Of a DNA stretch of 64,000 nucleotides, positions 12,681 through 43,000 are shown in pieces. The stretch's first letter is position 1, and each line of letters begins with the position of its first letter. The position numbers and the translations under genes were made by a program. The stretch spans positions 25,420,001 through 25,484,000 of the forward strand of contig OZ365114.1 in the NCBI GenBank assembly GCA_977030845.1. Direction: 5' to 3'. The DNA is from Fimbriosthenelais zetlandica. Lineage: Eukaryota. Under the pieces are notes generated by a model. The model was given only the letters and a program-made list of their open reading frames with translations. It was not told the origin of the DNA and made no database searches.

Positions 12681-15199
12681 ACTTATATTCTTTCTTTTGT
12701 TCTTGCATGATTATAGAGTCTGGCAAGTGAATGTACCTTTCCATCTGAGAAAGTTGAATAAAAGAATAAAAAGATAAAAGGATTTTTAAGGTTTGATTAA
12801 CTCAGTACAAGTACATGAGGTATCATTGGAAGATTGACTATATTTGATTGTCTCATTAAACCATTCTCCAATCAGTTTTTTTACAATAAAGCCTCTGAAA
12901 TTATTTGAGGGAGTTAATAATATTTGTAATGAAGATATGAGGATATCTCCCTCTCAGGATGATAATGCACTGAACGCACATTTTCGGATGATTACCCCCA
13001 TCCAGAGAAAGCAGACGTGAAGCTAACTTGTCAGCTTCTTTCTCATGGACACTTTTAGCTGCACAGAACTCATCTTGTAGGAGTAGTTTTGTTTACTGCG
13101 TCCCATACGCACTGACAAATCGCTGCGATATTGCTAAATCGTTCCTTAAGTAGCACCACTTGTAGCCACTCTCCCCTCCTCGCTGTCACTCTTCGGGCAC
13201 TTTTATTGAAGACTGTGCCTGCAAGCACAAGCAGAAAGATATCCCGACACACTTGCCGGGAAGCAATTGCCTTCCAAGTATTTGATGCATTGGCTTTCTT
13301 GAGAAATTGCCTTGCTGCACGAACGTGATTTATATAGGAAACTACGTTTCTGCGACTCTTTACATTAGGACTGTTCTTTGTATATATCCTTAAAAAATCT
13401 TGTGGAGAATACTGACCAACCCTTGTAATATGTGTAATCAGTTCATTGTAGAGAACGTCTCATCATGTAGCCATGTAATCATGACTAGACCAATCAGCCA
13501 TGCCCACCCACTGGCCTCCAGATATGTATGCCTGGCTTGTAACCGTTAAGGCAGCGGGGATGAAATACACAGTCTGCAGTACAGTGATACCAGCCTTACT
13601 TTGCCAGGCATATTTATCTCCTTGACAAGGCTCCTCCACTTCTGAGCCCTCTTGTACTGCAGCCCCCCACCCCCTCCTCCTCCTCTCCCCTTCTCTGCTC
13701 GTTCCACCCCTTCCCTCACTAAGCACCCCTTCACCCCAGCCTACACCAGCTAAAATTCAGCCAGCCCAGGAGAGAGGAGTAACAAGATGCTATCAGAATG
13801 CATGCAGTGTTTGGAGGAGGGGCTGAGGATGGCCTCCCCGGCTGATGGGAGCTGGAGGAAAGCTGGTGAATGAGCGAGTCATGCTGGTGAGCCACTCATC
13901 ACCACAGTGCCGCCATCACCTCATACAAGATTTATATCCCGAGTACATTGTCCCAGTATACTCACAAGGCCAAGCTTCTCATAATATATATTCTCCATGT
14001 TTTTATGTCCTCCTGTAGATTTTTCAGAAAAATTCCCAATAATCAAGATATCAACATCACATATTTACAATAATATGCTTACCTTAGTATTAAGTAAGTA
14101 CTGCTAAAATTCATAATTGACATATTACAAATTAAAGATGTATGCGCTTTGATTGTATACTTATGTTTATCGTCGTAAGTAGTACATCATAACATGGATT
14201 GAACCCAGGCACCATTTTCCTAGCATACTGCTATGCACATCCTTCATTTTACCAACTTAGGGACGGCCCAGTGAACAGGAACACCGTGTGCCGGTTCCTG
14301 TGGGGGTATATGCCCCTGACACGCCTTGGTGAATGGAGAATGCCAGTATTTTAGAGCACATGTTGGACTTAGACCTTGTAAATAATGTGACGTGACAGGG
14401 TAATTTCTTACAGAGATTGGGCTCTTACCACTGAAGGAAACCCATCTTGTGGTGTCTTGATTGAATGCATAATGTATCTCAACCTTTTGCTCTACATAGA
14501 GCATATAACTATTATGGATTGTGAAATGAATGCAAGATCTGTCATAATTATTTTGCATTGGGGTTTTAATCTGTGCTTCGCAGTACGTGATTTTATTGAA
14601 CTTAATTGTATATCATGCGTAGTGCAATCTGTTATGAACTGTACAGTTGTAGAACCCAACACGTCTACACAAAAAAAGTGGAGTCTTATGTGTAGAGAGA
14701 ACAGAGTATTGCTGAATACGAGTACATTCGTAGATGATTTGAGTTGAGTAACTAGGAGTGTTGTTCCGTTTGTCTCGTTTCTGTGTATATTGTAATAAGT
14801 AGTAATAGGAGATGGATATCATCAGTAGTCACACTCTCAGTCTGCTATTGACTCACAGCCTTTCCTTCATTCTGTCTGTCATCATCCTTCCCATAGCGTG
14901 TTCCTCAATACCAGATAATCTCTAGGAACTACAGTTGGACTGATAACTAAACTTCAATGGGAAATTTTAACTTTTTTCTCAATGATAATTACAGTGCCAG
15001 CCTCTTACGAAAAAACATGACATCTTCAAATTACAGGCAAAAATTGAAATGTGTTCACTCGCGAAATTCTATAAGGTAATGGCTTATAATTATCCTCTAG
15101 CTTAAAGCCCACAGGGCCTTAATTGATAATTGACTATGTGGACTATGTCTCTGGGATTAATTCAAATGGCTGAATCTGGATCTTTTGTATTTTGTTACC

Positions 15200-15560
15200 A
15201 TCATGTCCTCTACAGAAGTTTTCCTAGTAGCCTTAGCGAATACCAGACTTGATTAAGACTGGGGAGTGTCACTCTGGATGGCTGGAAGAAACGAAATAGA
15301 ATTTGTATTGACAACTTGTCACACTAGATTGTATTTAAGCCAGCAGAAACAATTTCTTGAAAGACACTTCAAAGCAGCAAGCAAAGCAATTTCAGTTGTG
15401 CAATTCTAGACTTGTTTTCGTGTCAAGGTGTTGTAAAAGAAGAGTTTGGGTATTGCAGACGACTGCTGATTGCGAACGACATAAATCGAAAATCAAGTTA
15501 GGGAATTCGCCAGCGCCTTGAGTTTGAGAAAGTAAAAATCTCATTAGAAATTATTAGGTG
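15200..15560 (-). mobile_element. BEL/Pao RNase H region relic
   Basis: DLCRSQSAVVC (~DASxxAYAAVVY) followed by SRIAQLKLLCLLL (~TIPRLELLAALL). Confidence 0.4.
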
Positions 15561-16089
15561 TCTAATATGCCATGAGGCCTGGGTTTTTCTTATTCTTCTA
15601 CTGTCATGTATTGCAGTTTAATGCATTTGATGTTGTGCCATATAACCATATACACATTATTAAGGAGTCCAAGCTGTAATAGACAGTAGAGTTGCTACAT
15701 AATGCTTGAAAGTAAGGAGATAAGTTTCTCCATTCCAGGCAGTCAGAAAGGAGTGGGTTGGAGAAGCTCTTCAGAATATGGTGTTTTCATTGGACCTCTC
15801 CATCCCTCCACACCCACACCCCGCTCACTGGGCATTGTGTGCCAGCTCTCAGCATCCTGATAAGAGAAGCTCAATGTGTCAGACCTGCTCCTCAGTCTTA
15901 TCTCTCCTCCTTGTACAAACACACTTGTTATCCCAAATGCACTGGCCCTGAAAAGATGAGAAGATCAGACTGAGCCTGAAAATGAATATTAGATAGTAAG
16001 CCCCAGGCAAGTTATAATTTGCTGAAGGATTTGTCAGGGCATGCCTGAACTGCTATACAGAATGCCAGAGAAAATGACATTGCTACGAA

Positions 16090-16600
16090 TAATAATTGAA
16101 ATTAAGAAAATCTGGCAGAAGATGGGATGAGGCAGCTCCTTTCTGTATCCTGCTTATTATGTTGAGGGGAAATGTTCCCTTACTTTTACATCACCTGATG
16201 ACTAATTGCACATTAACATTGCATTCTGTTGGCTTCTTTATTGATGAAACAACTTTTTATTCTAACAAAGGAGTACAATCTTTTGCACCTAGCTTTAATA
16301 CAACTTATTTTCTCTTTTCAGGTAAGTAAAAAATACAACAATTATCTCCTGAAAGAACATTATGTGAGTATGGCATATTTCATTTTTGCTAAGGAACAGC
16401 TGAGCACATGTATAAGACACTGACTTCACAAAGGCTGGTAAAGTCATTTGCAGAATTTCCTTTCTGGACTTTGATGTAAATGAAAGGATTATCATTGCCA
16501 TTTAATAGCAAGGAGAAAAAGACAGATTAAGTCATTAAACAAGACAATTACAGTTGCTGCTTCATACAGCGGAACAATGCGTAAACTTAAAATAGAACCA
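16090..16600 (+). mobile_element. Possible BEL/Pao RNase H relic
   Basis: LRKSGRRWDEAAP (~LWKxGLDWDEPLP), FIFAK (~FVMAK), FLWTL (~FWTDS). Motif spacing is longer than typical and the interval contains the candidate recursive splice site. Confidence 0.3.
16300..16369 (+). other. Candidate recursive splice site (3'ss/5'ss juxtaposed) with putative 42-nt RS-exon
   Basis: acttattttctcttttCAG|GTAAGT with AG at 16320-16321 and GT at 16322. Upstream CTAAC at ~16262. A downstream donor TAT|GTGAGT at 16364 defines 16322-16363 (42 nt). Same strand as EXT1, inside its long intron. Confidence 0.55.
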
Positions 16601-17199
16601 TTTGTTTCAAAACCCAAAGGTTGCTTCTGTTCCGAGTCTTATTTGTCCTGGCTGAGAAAATGACAGATGTTGATTGTCCTGCATAGTCGCCAGCACCTTG
16701 CTTCTATTATCCGTTAAATAAAGCATCTTTGTTGTAATTATTCATCAGCTTTATAGGAGTAATATATATATCTTCAACGCCCACCTCAATGGATTTGTTT
16801 AGCTTAGCCTGATTCCTATACCTGATCCATCACCTCTCGTCTTTGTTGGCTTTTCTGATTTATTCGTCAGGATTATATATCCCATGATGAATATCTGTGA
16901 CGCGATGAAATGAGCGAAAAGCATTAAAACATCTATATTTTTTCTTGGCTGTTCTTCTCCTTCGATCTGTTTTGTCAGAGAAGAAATGGGATGGTGGAGA
17001 GATGAGATGGACTTACTATAAGTCTTCCTTCTCCTGGCTATTCCCTGCTGGTATACGTTCTCTAGAGAGACCAAGAGAGACCTCACAAACATCTAGTCAG
17101 TCAAAATGAGGGACTCCCCCGCTCCGTCATGATTGATTGCCTTGTCTGATTGGCAGATAATCTTTGTGGACCTTTGCATATGTGAAATAGAGAGAGCCA

Positions 17200-17500
17200 C
17201 TTCGTGCTTCTGAGTTTCTTTCACTCCCCTGTTTTGCCAATTTCTTGTAGCTTTTTTGGGTGGAAGTCAGCCCTCTGCACTTTAAACGTCCCTTCCTCCT
17301 GCATACAGACGAGCAGTTTAGCGTCTGTTGAGGAAAATCTCTAACCCTCATGTATTGACTTCTCAGAGGTTGCTCTTTGTGGATGTGCTGATTCCTACCA
17401 GGCAGGCCTCTCTTCCTGCCCTGTTGGCTAGCACCGGGAGGAAACACCGTAAAGCATTGGAGTGGTGGTGATAATTTCACTCGCGTGCTTCATCCCATTC
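17200..17500 (+). mobile_element. Gypsy RT/RNase H relic
   Basis: RPFLLHTD at 17287-17310 (~RPFILHTDAS), followed by TSQRLL (~YASRKL). Confidence 0.4.
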
Positions 17501-18699
17501 ATCAGCGCCTGCCAGAGAGAAGGGACTTAGACTGGTGTGATGGCTGACAGCCTGCTAATCCTCTGTCCCGTCTTAGGGTCACCCACCCCTACACATCACC
17601 CGTCACCAGGACCCGGACATACCTCCAGGCCCTCCACCAGTGCGGCGTGTAGACTCTTCCCACTACCAGAGTGTGCCACCCTGTCTTCACTGAGGTCAGA
17701 ATAGCTTGATAGGCATATACTGCACAATAGTAACTGAAAATCATGTTCTCCACCAATGACCAATATTTTATTACAATCACTGGTCCTATCGGGTACTAAT
17801 TTATACCAAATCTTCAGCTCACAATACTTTTTGTCTGTGAAAACTGCAGAGATGGTCACTTGCCTGAGGAATTTGGGAACATGAACCCTTAGGGCTTCAA
17901 TTCTCCGGTTCAAAAATCAATAGGATTCCTTTAGATCTCATTTGCTCAGCCATTGACCTACATCCACCTGTCTGCTTCTAAGATGTCTCCCTCCGGACAA
18001 CATTAAAGATGCGATAATTATTTGTTCCGGGACCTAAGCCGCAACCTGTCCCCATCAGGCTGAGTTGCCTGTCAGAAATCCTTCGATCCACTTTGATGTT
18101 CTCGTGAAGATCCATCACTATGGCCGGCCAGGAGGGGTGTGGACGGGACTGGTGGCCGATAACAGGCCGATGATGGCGGGATGGAACCAGGGTGTGTAAA
18201 CAAGGATATGTTTGATCAGAATATAAGAAGGGCCGAGCCGTCTCTTGTTAATTAATCAACCCTATAACTACTGACCTGTGTTGCCTATTAACTTCTGCTC
18301 TAAACCTTTGGCACTTCCTATTATTGGGTAGCTCCACTGGGTTCTATTGCCTTGCAAGTGTTACGTTTTAATTGCGGCTAGCCCAATTGACTAACTTGCC
18401 TTAGGCCTCAACTGCCATATCAGTCGCAAATCGAGTACAATTTAGGCACCCTTGCAGATGGAAAGCCCCTGCTAATGCAGTTACATTTGCAGCAGAAAGT
18501 ATAGTTGAGTTACCCTATTGACCTTGGCCCCATAAGTTGCTGCATGTTTGAGGCTGTGGTAACCAAGCCTTTTATTCGAGGATATACTGCCTATATCTGT
18601 ACAGGATCAGTGATGTCATCTGTCAGGGTCAGTAAAGAGAGTATAAATAGCTGTGTACCATCTTACAAACTATTCCGTTAGGCCTATTCTTAGCACATC

Positions 18700-19450
18700 A
18701 AACTTTCTTTCATGATTAAATATAATCACCGAATTCACAGAAACCTTAATGGGTCTCTATAGAATACCCACTCAGTACACCAGTGATCATCTAAAGACAG
18801 TCAATACACGAGTCTCTCATGTATTTTGCTATAAAAGAATTTGCTTTACAAAGCACATTGTGTGGATCTATATTCCATTAGCCATTCCCTCTTCAGTGTT
18901 TGCATCAATGCTATTTTCCTGTGTACCACCCTGGTCTAAATGGCTGAAGAAAAAGGCAATATTTAAAGCCTTGAATGAATGGTGAATCCTCAGATCAGCG
19001 AGTCTATTTCAAGTGACTGATGATGAGGAGTTGACCTTGGAAGGGATGCCCTGGGGCTCATGAACTTGACTGAAAGAGAATGAGGATTTTCAACATTGTT
19101 ATTTGACACAAAGCAGCAGGGGGCTAGGTCATTTTTTCCCCTCCACCACATGATTCCCTCACCAAAGAGTGCGGGACCCCACAAGCCAAAAGCAATATGA
19201 TGTGATGGAAAATGTACAAGATTTAAGAGACCCAATTGGTGAGGCTGATGGAAATGTAATGTGTATTTGTGTCCAGGGGATTGGGGCCATAACTTGAGTA
19301 GAACAAATACGACGGTAGAGAATATTACAGTGAGACACACTCCAGAAATGGATATTATGGGATGGAGAAGAAATAGCTGACACATTGATGCAAGTATTTT
19401 CCAGTAGGCTGCGCTTCAATGGCCCGGGCCAGTGGTAGGCTGTCATTGGC
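18700..19450 (-). mobile_element. Gypsy integrase relic
   Basis: GIPSKVNSSSS (~GIPxxIxSDxG) at 19018-19052, LNIAFFFSHLDQGG (~LGIxxxxTxPYHPQTNG) and a later FYRDPL (~GRxVRGPL). Confidence 0.4.
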
Positions 19451-31860: not shown

Positions 31861-34800
31861 ATTTGATTACAAAACTCTGCTGCACAACTCCACCTTCTGT
31901 CTCGTACCTCGTGGCCGCAGGCTCGGCTCCTTTAGGTAAGCATCTCTCACGCCATCCTCCGCTTTTTACTCCTCACTTTTATTTATCCTCCATCGAGTAC
32001 TTCCTTCAGCATGATGTGACAGCCATTCAGAATCAATTCAGTTTGAACTAAGAGATCTATAGATCTGCTCTATTCAAAATCAGCAAGAATTTCCGAAGGA
32101 AGAAAGGATAATTCTTTATATAACAACGATGTATTTAGAATCTATAAAGCAATTAAGATAAAGTAAACTTTATTCTATACTTGTTGGGTATACATTTTTT
32201 TAGTTAGAATTTTTATAGAGCCTGTTATGGGTGAATACCAGCTCACTCTTGATTACACAAGTTTCTCGTATGATTTTCAGCTGTCTTTTGTTGATGAATT
32301 AGGCCTCTATATATGGGTTTATTTTAAGACATCTGGGGACATGTTTCAGGTTTTTGGAGGCCCTCCAGGCAGCCTGTATACCCGTTCTGCTCAGTAACGG
32401 ATGGGTGCTGCCTTTCCAGGAGGTGGTGGACTGGAACAAGGCTGCCATCTGGGGAGATGAACGCTTACTTCTACAGGTAGGTTACTCCAGCCTCTACTGA
32501 TGCTGGAAATAGTGAACATATTATCACTTACATAAAAACTGTCTTTGATAGATTATGCATCACAGATCTGTACTGTAGATTGTCTGGTCATTTTTCAGAT
32601 TCCCTCCATCGTCCGGTCAACCAGCCATGCTGATATTCTGCTGTTGAGGCAGCAGACACAGTTCCTGTGGCAAACCTATTTTTCTTCTATAGATAAAATT
32701 GTACAAACAACATTAGAGGTGAGTTAATTGAGTGACGTATGCCTACCCACCCTAAAAAAATACAGTATAATATTATTCAATTTACTACTACAAACACATG
32801 AGAATAGTACTTCTCGTAACAAAACAGATAAGTATATATTACTACAAACATTTGAATAGTATTTTATTTATTTTCTTAAAATCGAAATTCCCTGTTTGAC
32901 AGATTGTTAAGGAGCGTGTGGAGTCGCACCTCTCCCGCTCATCATTCGTGTGGAACTCCATCCCTGGAGCTGTAGCCGTGCTTCCTGAATACTCACAAGA
33001 TGTGACCAGGTTCCCCTTCTACATGCGCCAGCTGGGCCTGGAGCCTGCTTCCCATTTCACTGCCATTATTTATACTACTACTCCCACAGTCACACCCTCA
33101 GCTCCCATAGTCCGCCTCATTAGAAATCTTTCCAAATCCAAGCATTTAGATAGGGTAAGTGGATCTTTATCTCTCATGCCACATTGTCTTATAATATATT
33201 AATCTGTAGTAAAAGTGATGCTGTTACAATTATAAGTAAAAGAGATACTGTATATAAAGCTATTAAGCTGGAATTAAAGCGGAACGTGTGAGAGGATAAG
33301 CCTGTAAATATATTCAGCTGAATCCGTTGAGAGAAGGATCAACTTGATGAATCTCATTTTGAGTATAAAATCTCATTTTGAGTATAAAGTTTGTGAGTTA
33401 TTAGATTGTGTCTATCTTTTCAGATATTGATATTATGGCACTGTGACACGCCTCCCCCTATAGATCGACGATGGCCTGTGCCAAGACATGTAACTATGAT
33501 AGTAAAACAAATTAGTGTAAGTATTAAATACATTCACCTCCAAAGAAAATGTTTACATACCTTCTGTTGAATCCTGAATTTCTTCATGTTGACGTGTTTT
33601 ATGGGATTTCTTTCCATCCCATTGAACGTGGTGATGCATTTATTATCTGTAATTACAATATAGGATGTATTTTTTTGTGTTTTGAATGTCTTTCCTTCAG
33701 CTTTTGGTCTGTATAATTTACCTGTTTTTCACCTTGTTTTTACAGACTGTCAGCTAGGTTGTATAATGACGTGTTTTTCACCTTGTTTTTACAGACTTTG
33801 TCAGCTAGGTTGTATCCATATGATGAGATTCATACTGACGCAGTGTTAGGTCTGGATGAGGACGCCATGCTCACCACAGATGAGGTTTGAACATCATATG
33901 CACTTCCTCTTCCTTCCCACGTTTCCGTAGATAAATAAATGAGTAAATCGATTATATTACACAAATATTCCATAGCGATTTTACAAACGGCACTGCTATT
34001 AACAGGTAGATTTCTGTCGTGAGCAATGGCTTGGAGATAATGATTCAAGTAAACTGTTTTTTCTTTATATAATAATAACTATTTCACTGTTGTTTTTCAG
34101 GTTGATTTTGCTTTCTCTGTGTGGCGTAACTTCCCTGACCGGATCGTAGGCTACCCTGCCAGAAGCCACTACTGGGACGAGAGTCGGGCTTGCTGGGGCT
34201 ACACGTCCAAATGGACGAATGATTATTCCATGGTGCTCACCAGTGCAGCGTTCTACCATAGGTTTGTGTTCAGGCCTTCTTTTGAATATCAAATAGTGAA
34301 ATTCTAATAATTTATCAAAGCAACTATGATATAGTAGGCTTACTAATGGTGGAGAACCCCCTTTTAATTTTATCGCGGCCCGACCCAAAATAATTTGTCT
34401 CTTATTGAAGATCAGAAGACAAGGTATAGGTGATTTTTTCTGCCGATTCTTCTGGCTTGATATGGTATATAATATAATGTTTTTAATCTTGCTTTCAGGT
34501 ATTATTTAGACTTATATAGTTCATATTTGGGTCGAGAAACGAGACTGCTGGTCGACTCGACCCAGAACTGTGAAGACATCCTCATGAACTTCCTTATATC
34601 CCACATCACAAAACACCCCCCTATCAAAGTTACCCAGAGGAAAATCTACAAGGATTCCATGTTGCCCGGCAATGACCATTCAGGCGTGTGGACGCAGCCT
34701 GAGCATTTCCGCCAGCGACAAGTGTGTATTAACAAGTTTGTGGATGTCTTCGGCTACATGCCTCTCATCCGCTCTAACCTCCGGCTTGATCCGGTCCTCT

Positions 34801-34862
34801 TCAAAGACCCTGTTTCCATATCTCGGAAAAAGTACCGACAAATAGAGAACGTCTCGAGTTGA
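31861..34862 (+). CDS. EXT1: Exostosin-1 (heparan sulfate polymerase; GT47 C-terminal part + GT64 domain), 5'-partial
   Basis: Exons 31861-31935, 32350-32476, 32599-32718, 32903-33154, 33424-33516, 33795-33884, 34101-34261, 34499-34862; all GT-AG and phase-consistent. Translation includes [31 protein letters not shown] (DxD-like), [44 protein letters not shown] and LDPVLFKD, which are EXT1-diagnostic rather than EXT2. Confidence 0.95.
33723..33815 (+). repeat. Tandem duplication of an EXT1 splice acceptor plus exon start
   Basis: tgtttttcaccttgtttttacag-act(tt)gtcagctaggttgtat occurs at 33723-33764 and 33772-33815. The upstream copy lacks 2 nt. Confidence 0.9.
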
Positions 34863-40085: not shown

Positions 40086-43000
40086 ATGCATTGTCTTATT
40101 GTGTTTCTCGTGCTGGGCTCAGCACTGATCGTGGGTGAGTGATTTTATTATAAAAACATTTTATTACATTTACTCCTACTTTACTTATCTAATATTATCT
40201 AAGTGTGTGAATATCCTCGGTCATGAGCCAAATATTATATATCTTAGTGTTTATCATATAGTTGGTTAATTGAATTAAACTGAAACATCTCTTCAAATAT
40301 GACTTTAATTTAAAGCTGGAGTTCCACCGGGATGGCTTCATCACAAGACAAAGCCTGGAAAACCATGGAAAAACTGGAAGCCACACCACAATGTCTCTCA
40401 GCCTGAGGATGACGCATACCCTGGCAAACCCAACATAACCACCTCATCAGAAAATGGCACTGAAGACACGGACCCTTACGGCGGAAACAAATGGAAACAT
40501 CCAAAATGGCCAAAGCCTGAGAAACCTAGCCAAGCTTCCAATGACACAGATGATTCTACTAGTGGGGAAAATGAAGCCAACAAATGGAAACCTCCCAAGA
40601 AAAATAAGAAACATCCAAAATGGCCAAAACCTGATAAACCTAGTCAAGCTGCCATTGACAATGACACAGATGATTCTACAAGTGGAGGAAATGAAGCCAA
40701 CAAATGGAAACCGCCCAAGAAAGATAAGAAACATCCCAAATGGCCAAAACCTGAGAAACCTAACGAAGCTGCCAAGAACAATGGCACAGATGATTCTACT
40801 AGTGGAGAAAATGAAGCCAACAAATGGAAACCACCCAAGAAAGATAAGAAGAAACATCCAAAATGGCCAAAACCTGAGAAGCCTAGCCAAGCTGCCAATG
40901 ATACAGATAATTCTGAAAGTGGGGAAGATGAAGCTAACGATTGGAAACCACCCAAGAAAAATAAGAACAAACATCCAAAATGGCCAAAACCTGAGAAACC
41001 TAGCCAAGCTTCCAATGAAAATGACACAGATGATTCTACAAGTGGGGAAAATGAAGCCAACAAATGGAAACCATCCAAGAAAAATAAGAACAAACATTCA
41101 AATTTGCAAAAACCTGACAAAGCTGCTATTGACAGAGTCAAAGAACATGATAAATTGGTTGCTGTTAAAAGTAAAGAAGTCAACCGAAGAGAAAATAAAA
41201 ATATGGGTTCAGAAGAAGACATGAATGAAGGCAACGTCACCAAACAGTCGGAGGATCATTCTCCAGAACAGGTGAATGGGAGTGAAGAAGGGGACGACTC
41301 TTTGTGGGATCATGCATTTGGTCCACCAAAATCCTTAGATGATGTGGAAGAGGAAGGCAATGAATTAGGAGACAATGGTGAGTACAATTCTGTAACTTGC
41401 ATACTTCTAAGCTAGGCCTTTTATAGGATGTTAGAACTCAGTCATCTTTTGTCCATTACTATATGTGTGGTCATGAAAATGCAAAAATATTTCACATATC
41501 TCGTTTTATCTCTCTCTAATAGGTGGTCAGCAACTAATGAAACGCCATCATTATTCTTCACCGTGTTATTACGTCTATAAATATCAAAAATGTAAGTCAT
41601 CACAGAATACATTTTGAACATTATTCCATTTAATTTTTTCACAAAAACTTATATGAAATTTCTAAATGAACTATCGCCTATTTTTGCAGGCAGATTCTCG
41701 TACTACAAAAAGTACTCGCGTTGTTGTAANNNNNNNNNNNNNNNNNNNNNNNNNNNNNNNNNNNNNNNNNNNNNNNNNNNNNNNNNNNNNNNNNNNNNNN
41801 NNNNNNNNNNNNNNNNNNNNNNNNNNNNNNNNNNNNNNNNNNNNNNNNNNNNNNNNNNNNNNNNNNNNNNNNNNNCCTCCAGTACCACAGCGGGTGCCGC
41901 AGGTACCGGTATGTTATCCACCTTCATACTCTGACTAAATAAATTCCCACATTACCCATATGTAGCTTCTGAAACAATCTAAACCACCTATAACATGTTC
42001 TTCTAGGGAGGTGTGGAGAGACCAGGTCCTATCGTTCAGTATACGAGACCCTCGTAGACCGTATCGTTGGTGGTCAAGAAACCAAACCAAATAAGTACCC
42101 TTTTATGGCATCACTGCGGAGAAGTGATAGTAATGACTTTCAGTTTTGTGGAGGTTCCATAATAAGTGAGAGATGCATCTTGACTGCAGCGCATTGCATG
42201 AAGGACCAGGATGGCAGGTAACAAAGAATATCATAGGCCCATATATCCTCAAATCAATTTAAAATATGCAACAATGTTACAGAGGGGTACAGGTTGCTGG
42301 TAACAAGTTCTTGGTCTGACCTTATCTTCGTTCCAGAGATCTGAGAGCATCTCAAGTAAAAGTTGGCGTCGGTGAACATGACAAATCCAGAGGTACCATG
42401 AAGATGGATGTGGAACAAATAATCTGTCATAACAATTATGGTAAATTAATTTATCACTTTTTTCGTCCACCTTACAATGCAATTTATTTTTCTTGTAGTA
42501 ACAATATTCCACTATTTCCTCTTGCAGACTCAACGAGTTTCAATAATGACATTTGTATTCTGAAGTTGGCAAATTCTCTTAACTTCAATGACCCTAAAAT
42601 AGGAACAGTATGCTTGCCCGAGCAGGACCGAAAGCTCCCATCTGGTGAACGCTGCACTACAATTGGTTGGGGTAGAACACGTAAGTCTTTTTGATAGAAT
42701 CTGAGGGTTATATTTCCCTTTATATTCCAAGACCAGATAACACGGATCAAAGTTTAGGTTTTGATACAACTTTAATTATATTAATATAAGGATAAGAAAT
42801 GTCAGGAGGAAGCACTTTCAACTTTGTACAGGGTATAAAGGACCGGCTAGTGATATTCTCATGGAGGTAGATGTTCCTGTGTTAGACCCTAACACATGCG
42901 CCGACAAGTATAGAAGGTATAAATCATACGAAAAGGTGAGAAACATTCACATTTAATCAGACATCCATTTATTGAGTACCCAATAACGTACAAACCAAAC

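Follow-up and report, generated by a model that had tools for sequence, protein, structure and literature searches.

A putative Drosophila-type ratchet point with a cryptic RS-exon in the giant first intron of EXT1 in a non-arthropod, probably spiralian, invertebrate

We identified a site within the first intron of an EXT1 gene that in our judgement is probably a Drosophila-type ratchet point with a cryptic RS-exon behind it; the host animal is not an arthropod and probably is a spiralian. Of three ratchet points that would allow intron 1 to be removed in four steps, the site, at 16321|16322, would be the last. Unless given as genome coordinates, all positions refer to the window, which is the whole stretch of 64,000 nucleotides that was analysed (genome C21:25420001-25484000).

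In a whole-genome Pfam search, Exostosin_GT47 was matched at a position 61 kb ahead of the window, and the rest of EXT1 was located at 32.3-34.9 kb within it, both on the + strand. Exon 1, the protein of which starts with MQAKKRYF, ends with ..GAC AA|GTAAGT at genome C21:25359753 in phase 2, and a tblastn search using full-length relatives as queries found no exon before window position 31861. The named relatives of the gene are all EXT1/tout-velu, and the host gene is identified from its sequence as an EXT1 orthologue. In a tree of this single gene, the animal groups with an annelid, apart from ecdysozoans and deuterostomes, and on this basis it is probably a spiralian. The parts of the gene that fall within the window are the following.

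1-31860, + strand: 3′ part of EXT1 intron 1, which as a whole spans genome C21:25359754-25451860 (92,107 nt)
31861-31935, + strand: EXT1 exon 2, which begins A TTT GAT TAC.. and is preceded by ttttttccAG, the final acceptor of intron 1
32342-34862, + strand: remaining EXT1 exons (2.5 kb), with the end of Exostosin_GT47 and the Glyco_transf_64 domain; the stop codon ends at 34862

Site 16322 lies on the sense strand of this very long intron, 76.6 kb from the beginning of the intron and 15.5 kb before exon 2. The initial annotation had assigned the interval to EXT1 intron 1 and had described that intron as phase 2, which is borne out by the end of exon 1 and the start of exon 2 bracketing the site on the same strand; the site is, however, situated at 83% of the intron length and not in the middle of the intron, as had been stated. 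Around the junction, we recognised the following elements.

16262-16266, + strand: CTAAC, a candidate branch-like motif from sequence only, with its A 56 nt ahead of the acceptor G
16295-16299, + strand: TTAAT, a nearer branch-like candidate of the same kind
16304-16319, + strand: pyrimidine tract, the sole purine of which is the A at 16307
16304-16321, + strand: predicted recursive 3′ splice site, consisting of the tract plus CAG, with AG at 16320-16321
16322-16327, + strand: predicted ratchet-point donor GTAAGT
16322-16363, + strand: predicted cryptic 42-nt RS-exon, the retained form of which reads AA|G TAA, an immediate stop
16364-16369, + strand: predicted RS-exon donor TAT|GTGAGTATG (GTGAGT)

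The pyrimidine tract, GTAAGT, a CTAAC motif at ~55 nt and GTGAGT 42 nt downstream had all been reported before and are all present. The architecture of a ratchet point plus RS-exon that had been claimed from them also stood up to inspection, with pyrimidines at 15 of the 18 positions upstream of position -3 of the acceptor at 16321, the juxtaposed acceptor and donor CAG|GTAAGT at 16319-16327 and a second donor at +42. In addition, TT occupies positions -5/-6 of this acceptor (T at 16316 and 16317). Donor strength was ranked by consensus matches alone; on that measure, the ratchet donor CAG|GTAAGT agrees with the consensus at 9 of 9 positions and the RS-exon donor TAT|GTGAGT fits less well, so that the cryptic exon, which at 42 nt belongs to the ~50-nt class, ends at the weaker of the two donors. 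The 11-mer TAT|GTGAGTATG at the 16364 donor is identical to one at a site farther upstream, at genome 25412754. When the ..CAA end of exon 1 is joined in silico to the GTAAGT of 16322, the predicted product is CAA|GTAAGT, the hexamer of exon 1's genomic donor.

Scanning for AG|GTRAGT on both strands of 134 kb (the window plus 70 kb upstream) yielded only three sites that come with a strong pyrimidine tract; each of them lies within intron 1 on the sense strand, and the antisense strand gave none.

Genome 25394392, + strand: ratchet-like site 1, second donor GTAAGA at +54
Genome 25412754, + strand: ratchet-like site 2, second donor TAT|GTGAGTATG at +53
Genome 25436322 (window 16322), + strand: ratchet-like site 3, second donor TAT|GTGAGTATG at +42

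All three intron 1 sites have TT at -5/-6, and together they split the intron into segments of 34.6, 18.4, 23.6 and 15.5 kb. When intron 1 was shuffled 4000 times under a first-order Markov model, strict sites averaged 0.0073 per strand and none of the 4000 shuffles contained two or more, with a Poisson probability of at least three sites of ~6 × 10−8. Using instead the empirical genome density of the bare motif, which is ~0.03 per 92 kb, the probability of at least three sites is ~5 × 10−6. The element at 16322 exceeds chance.

Genome-wide, the bare 16-nt ratchet motif had 308 matches compared with 283 for a backwards control and was not enriched, and many of its matches are copies of one repeat. 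A dispersed repeat family with TTCCTCACAGGTAAGT, exemplified by C11:1242753-1760663, accounts for a large share of the ratchet-motif matches; among the matches listed, this 16-mer was found in none of those with two donors. Because the frequency of the bare motif in the genome is no higher than that of its backwards control, the motif is weak as proof by itself. The two-donor architecture, a ratchet motif followed by GTRAGT 25-55 nt downstream, had 50 matches genome-wide, compared with 14 when the pattern was read backwards and four, two of them in a tandem repeat, when the donor was moved upstream of the motif. The two-donor architecture is therefore 4- to 12-fold enriched and directional. 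Among the matches listed, two-donor neighbours within 100 kb of each other were always on the same strand; about 0.4 pairs at this distance would be expected by chance (a rough estimate), half of them on opposite strands. The same-strand clusters among the matches listed comprised four sites on C10 (−), a pair on C1 (+), a pair on C19 (−) and two pairs on C21 (+), one of which is the EXT1 pair.

Taken together, the enrichment, the directionality and the same-strand clustering of the two-donor architecture place site 16322, as judged from its build, in a class of elements that are under selection in this genome. The evidence for a selected element over a chance motif is stronger than was known to the initial annotation. 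The other same-strand clusters likely mark further giant introns that are recursively spliced.

The further clusters are situated at C10:24137652-24209074 (−), at C21:26094809 and 26124237 (+), at C19:20827212 and 20851525 (−) and at C1:25559075 and 25637455 (+), with spacings of 19-78 kb overall. The four C10 sites have the 16-mer CTTTTTCTAGGTAAGT in common.

The initial annotation had proposed that the motif be checked for conservation in orthologous introns and had counted a lack of it against the idea; conservation was found neither in organism A, where the comparison has low power, nor in species B, the intron of which is much shorter. A search for sequencing runs that match 5 kb of the intron listed none, and one with exon 1 listed only four, with a word share of 0.07 and no RNA run among them. 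On comparison over 13400-19300, these four were DNA contigs of organism A, a close relative (its exon 1 protein P0151 is 92% identical). Its 10.9-kb contig is collinear with window 13611-17607 and aligns at 13611-13659, 13779-13815, 15295-15339, 15907-15936 and 17456-17607; between 15936 and 17456, nothing aligned with a method that needs ~30 nt at ≥80% identity. Three low-depth X2-only pieces of organism A fall in bins 14385-14581 and 15961-16354. Because no island was aligned here, the 67-nt unit is not kept in organism A at ≥80% over at least 30 nt, a core of 8-20 nt being below detection, and under the same limit of 30 nt at ≥80% no conservation of the RS-exon body was detected.

These five islands and another one at 19187-19295 are non-coding and have 80-93% identity to the organism A contig; the part at 19199-19273 also matches intron 1 of species B, at 77%. 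Such conserved non-coding islands may serve as regulatory elements within the intron.

In species B (ENA ERZ25767047), which is 80% identical, intron 1 was followed from exon 1 to exon 2 and has a length of ~24.5 kb. No ratchet-like site was found in it on either strand, relaxed criteria included. Only two collinear intron 1 islands are common to species B and the host; they flank all three host sites and are 52.8 kb apart here versus 15.1 kb in species B. Because a single segment of the host intron can match or exceed the whole 24.5-kb intron in length, the absence of sites from species B is confounded. EXT1 exon 1 of species B is present on two contigs (L009 and L010 of the same assembly) with an identical exon 1 protein and similar neighbours, and these are probably two haplotigs; intron 1 of this species contains reverse-transcriptase ORFs. 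Identity was 72% for species C (ERZ26222911), and the closest homologue of the last exon, P0267, is 80% identical and lies on a 540-nt contig.

The alternative that survives best is that the site is a chance or neutral pseudo-site, a fortuitous juxtaposition of acceptor and donor in a long AT-rich intron that is never or only negligibly used. Such an origin would agree with the count of the bare motif (308 versus 283 for the control) and with the fact that conservation was detected in neither organism A nor species B. It is at odds with three strict sense-strand sites in one intron, where 0.007-0.03 are expected and the antisense strand has 0, and with a second donor 42-54 nt downstream of each of them in an architecture that is 4- to 12-fold enriched, directional and arranged in same-strand clusters. 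We consider a pseudo-site unlikely.

To our knowledge, experimental demonstrations of recursive splicing are almost confined to Drosophila and a few vertebrate genes. Drosophila examples are Ubx, kuz, Bx and luna (Hatton 1998, Burnette 2005, Duff 2015, Joseph 2018/2021). In Drosophila ratchet points, acceptor and donor are joined in tandem, the pyrimidine tract is prominent and a cryptic RS-exon of ~50 nt follows; its donor as a rule falls short of the ratchet donor in strength, so that the exon is recognised and then skipped (PMC8605326). Duff et al. described 197 Drosophila ratchet points, 99.5% of which have TT at -5/-6, and recursive segments with a mean of 17,953 ± 9,039 nt (10.1101/006163). 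The EXT1 site resembles them in its long pyrimidine tract, in TT at -5/-6, in (C/T)AG|GTAAGT and in a ~50-nt cryptic exon with a weaker donor. The likeness extends to the intron, which has several sites as giant introns of Drosophila do and segments of ~15-35 kb, and to the RS-exon, the content of which would break the frame; the four segments of EXT1 intron 1 (34.6, 18.4, 23.6 and 15.5 kb) are within the Drosophila range (10.1101/006163). At the junction, ratchet points of Drosophila have been described as ultraconserved (PMC8605326). In contrast to those, the present site is found in a non-arthropod host and is predicted from sequence, conservation was not found, and the 80%-identical species B lacks both the site and ~68 kb of the intron.

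The vertebrate RS-exons (Sibley 2015; Blazquez 2018) are also comparable to what we propose, in that definition of the RS-exon comes before the regenerated donor competes with the exon's own donor, and in that inclusion gives a premature stop (PMC8605326). In mammals, only nine fully suppressed intronic sites have been definitively noted and most RS-exons are expressed (PMC8605326), whereas the two-donor excess seen here amounts to some tens of sites genome-wide that are clustered several per locus, as in flies. For human EXT1 intron 1, an intra-intronic splicing intermediate was reported by Kelly et al. 2015 (PMC4482092). The human exon-intron splicing intermediates share with the site described here both the gene and its giant first intron, but the human product was obtained from RT-PCR tiling, its description does not mention a zero-nucleotide AG|GTAAGT ratchet point, and we claim no homology. 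A literature search, with most subscription journals outside it, returned no relevant paper tying recursive splicing to Lophotrochozoa, annelids or molluscs.

From the features of the junction and of the intron, we infer that the site is used in splicing and that the steps follow the order proposed here. During transcription, 16322-16363 would be recognised as a short exon via its strong acceptor and the downstream GTGAGT, and exon 1, or the donor regenerated at the preceding ratchet point, would be spliced to 16322. GTAAGT would then stand directly behind the ..CAA of exon 1, which would rebuild the hexamer of exon 1's genomic donor. This rebuilt and stronger donor would outcompete the RS-exon donor and be spliced to exon 2, 15.5 kb downstream, leaving a mature mRNA without any trace of the 16322 site. 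The sole role of the 42-nt exon would be exon definition, and the TAA at its start would turn mistaken inclusion into a nonsense transcript, which may be a side effect or a fail-safe and would not constitute a regulatory switch.

A regulated poison cassette exon would be a different use of the same elements. In that case, 16322-16363 would be included in a fraction of EXT1 mRNAs that are then removed by nonsense-mediated decay, tuning heparan sulfate synthesis, as the initial annotation had envisaged. Its reading of an included 42-nt exon as AA|G TAA, an immediate stop, was correct, and expressed RS-exons do occur in flies and are frequent in mammals (PMC8605326). Because GTAAGT in any phase-2 intron gives a stop automatically, however, the immediate TAA is what all three intron 1 sites have in common upon inclusion, and it does not single out a regulated exon. 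Because the ratchet donor fits the consensus better (9 of 9 positions) than the exon donor TAT|GTGAGT, the donor competition model (PMC8605326) predicts complete skipping. A poison cassette should have a competitive donor of its own and a conserved exon; the exon described here has the weaker donor and, in organism A, a body without detectable conservation. NMD-coupled control is therefore not upheld, and we regard a regulated poison exon as quite improbable.

Slightly less probable still is that the element belongs to another transcript, be it that of a shorter EXT1 isoform, where it would serve as an alternative exon (first or internal), or that of a + strand gene that is nested or non-coding: conserved non-coding islands nearby would suit it, but the vicinity of the site contains neither an ORF assigned to Pfam nor an Rfam family nor a repeat, an ordinary exon has no reason to start with a perfect GTAAGT, and the same build is found twice more upstream within intron 1.

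Recruitment of the site from TE-derived sequence, another earlier suggestion, was rejected: the 701 nt around the site are single-copy (16000-16700 matches only itself in the genome), nearby ORFs belong to no Pfam family and there are no meaningful repeats or repeat signals nearby. Structured RNA was likewise dismissed as a candidate after an Rfam search of window 1-36000 gave nothing.

If the ratchet point at 16321|16322 and its two sisters are real, the solution of combining a ratchet point with an RS-exon for very long introns extends to a non-arthropod, probably spiralian, invertebrate. More tentatively, and with somewhat less than even confidence, we suggest that recursive splicing of the fly type, with cryptic RS-exons, operates throughout the genome of this probable spiralian, and that its sites come and go as introns grow and shrink instead of being fixed since ancient times, which is what the fly data suggest. 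The EXT1 intron of species B, which is four times shorter and without such sites, provides a concrete comparison for the question of whether intron expansion gives rise to ratchet points. A mutation that weakens any of the three GTAAGT donors is expected to impose inclusion of a cryptic exon with a stop and to create a loss-of-function allele; kuz and Ubx in flies provide a precedent for the effect of weakening a ratchet donor (PMC8605326).

Several other loci were observed in the course of the analysis. A second, compact EXT-family gene is located at C21:25604724-25613205 (−), ~150 kb after EXT1, with its GT47 and GT64 matches within ~9 kb, and more EXT-like loci are present on C19, on C27 and at C21:30.70 Mb. 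Within the window, 40447-41243 contains long overlapping ORFs on both strands that consist of repeats of a unit in which K, W, P, F and G are abundant.
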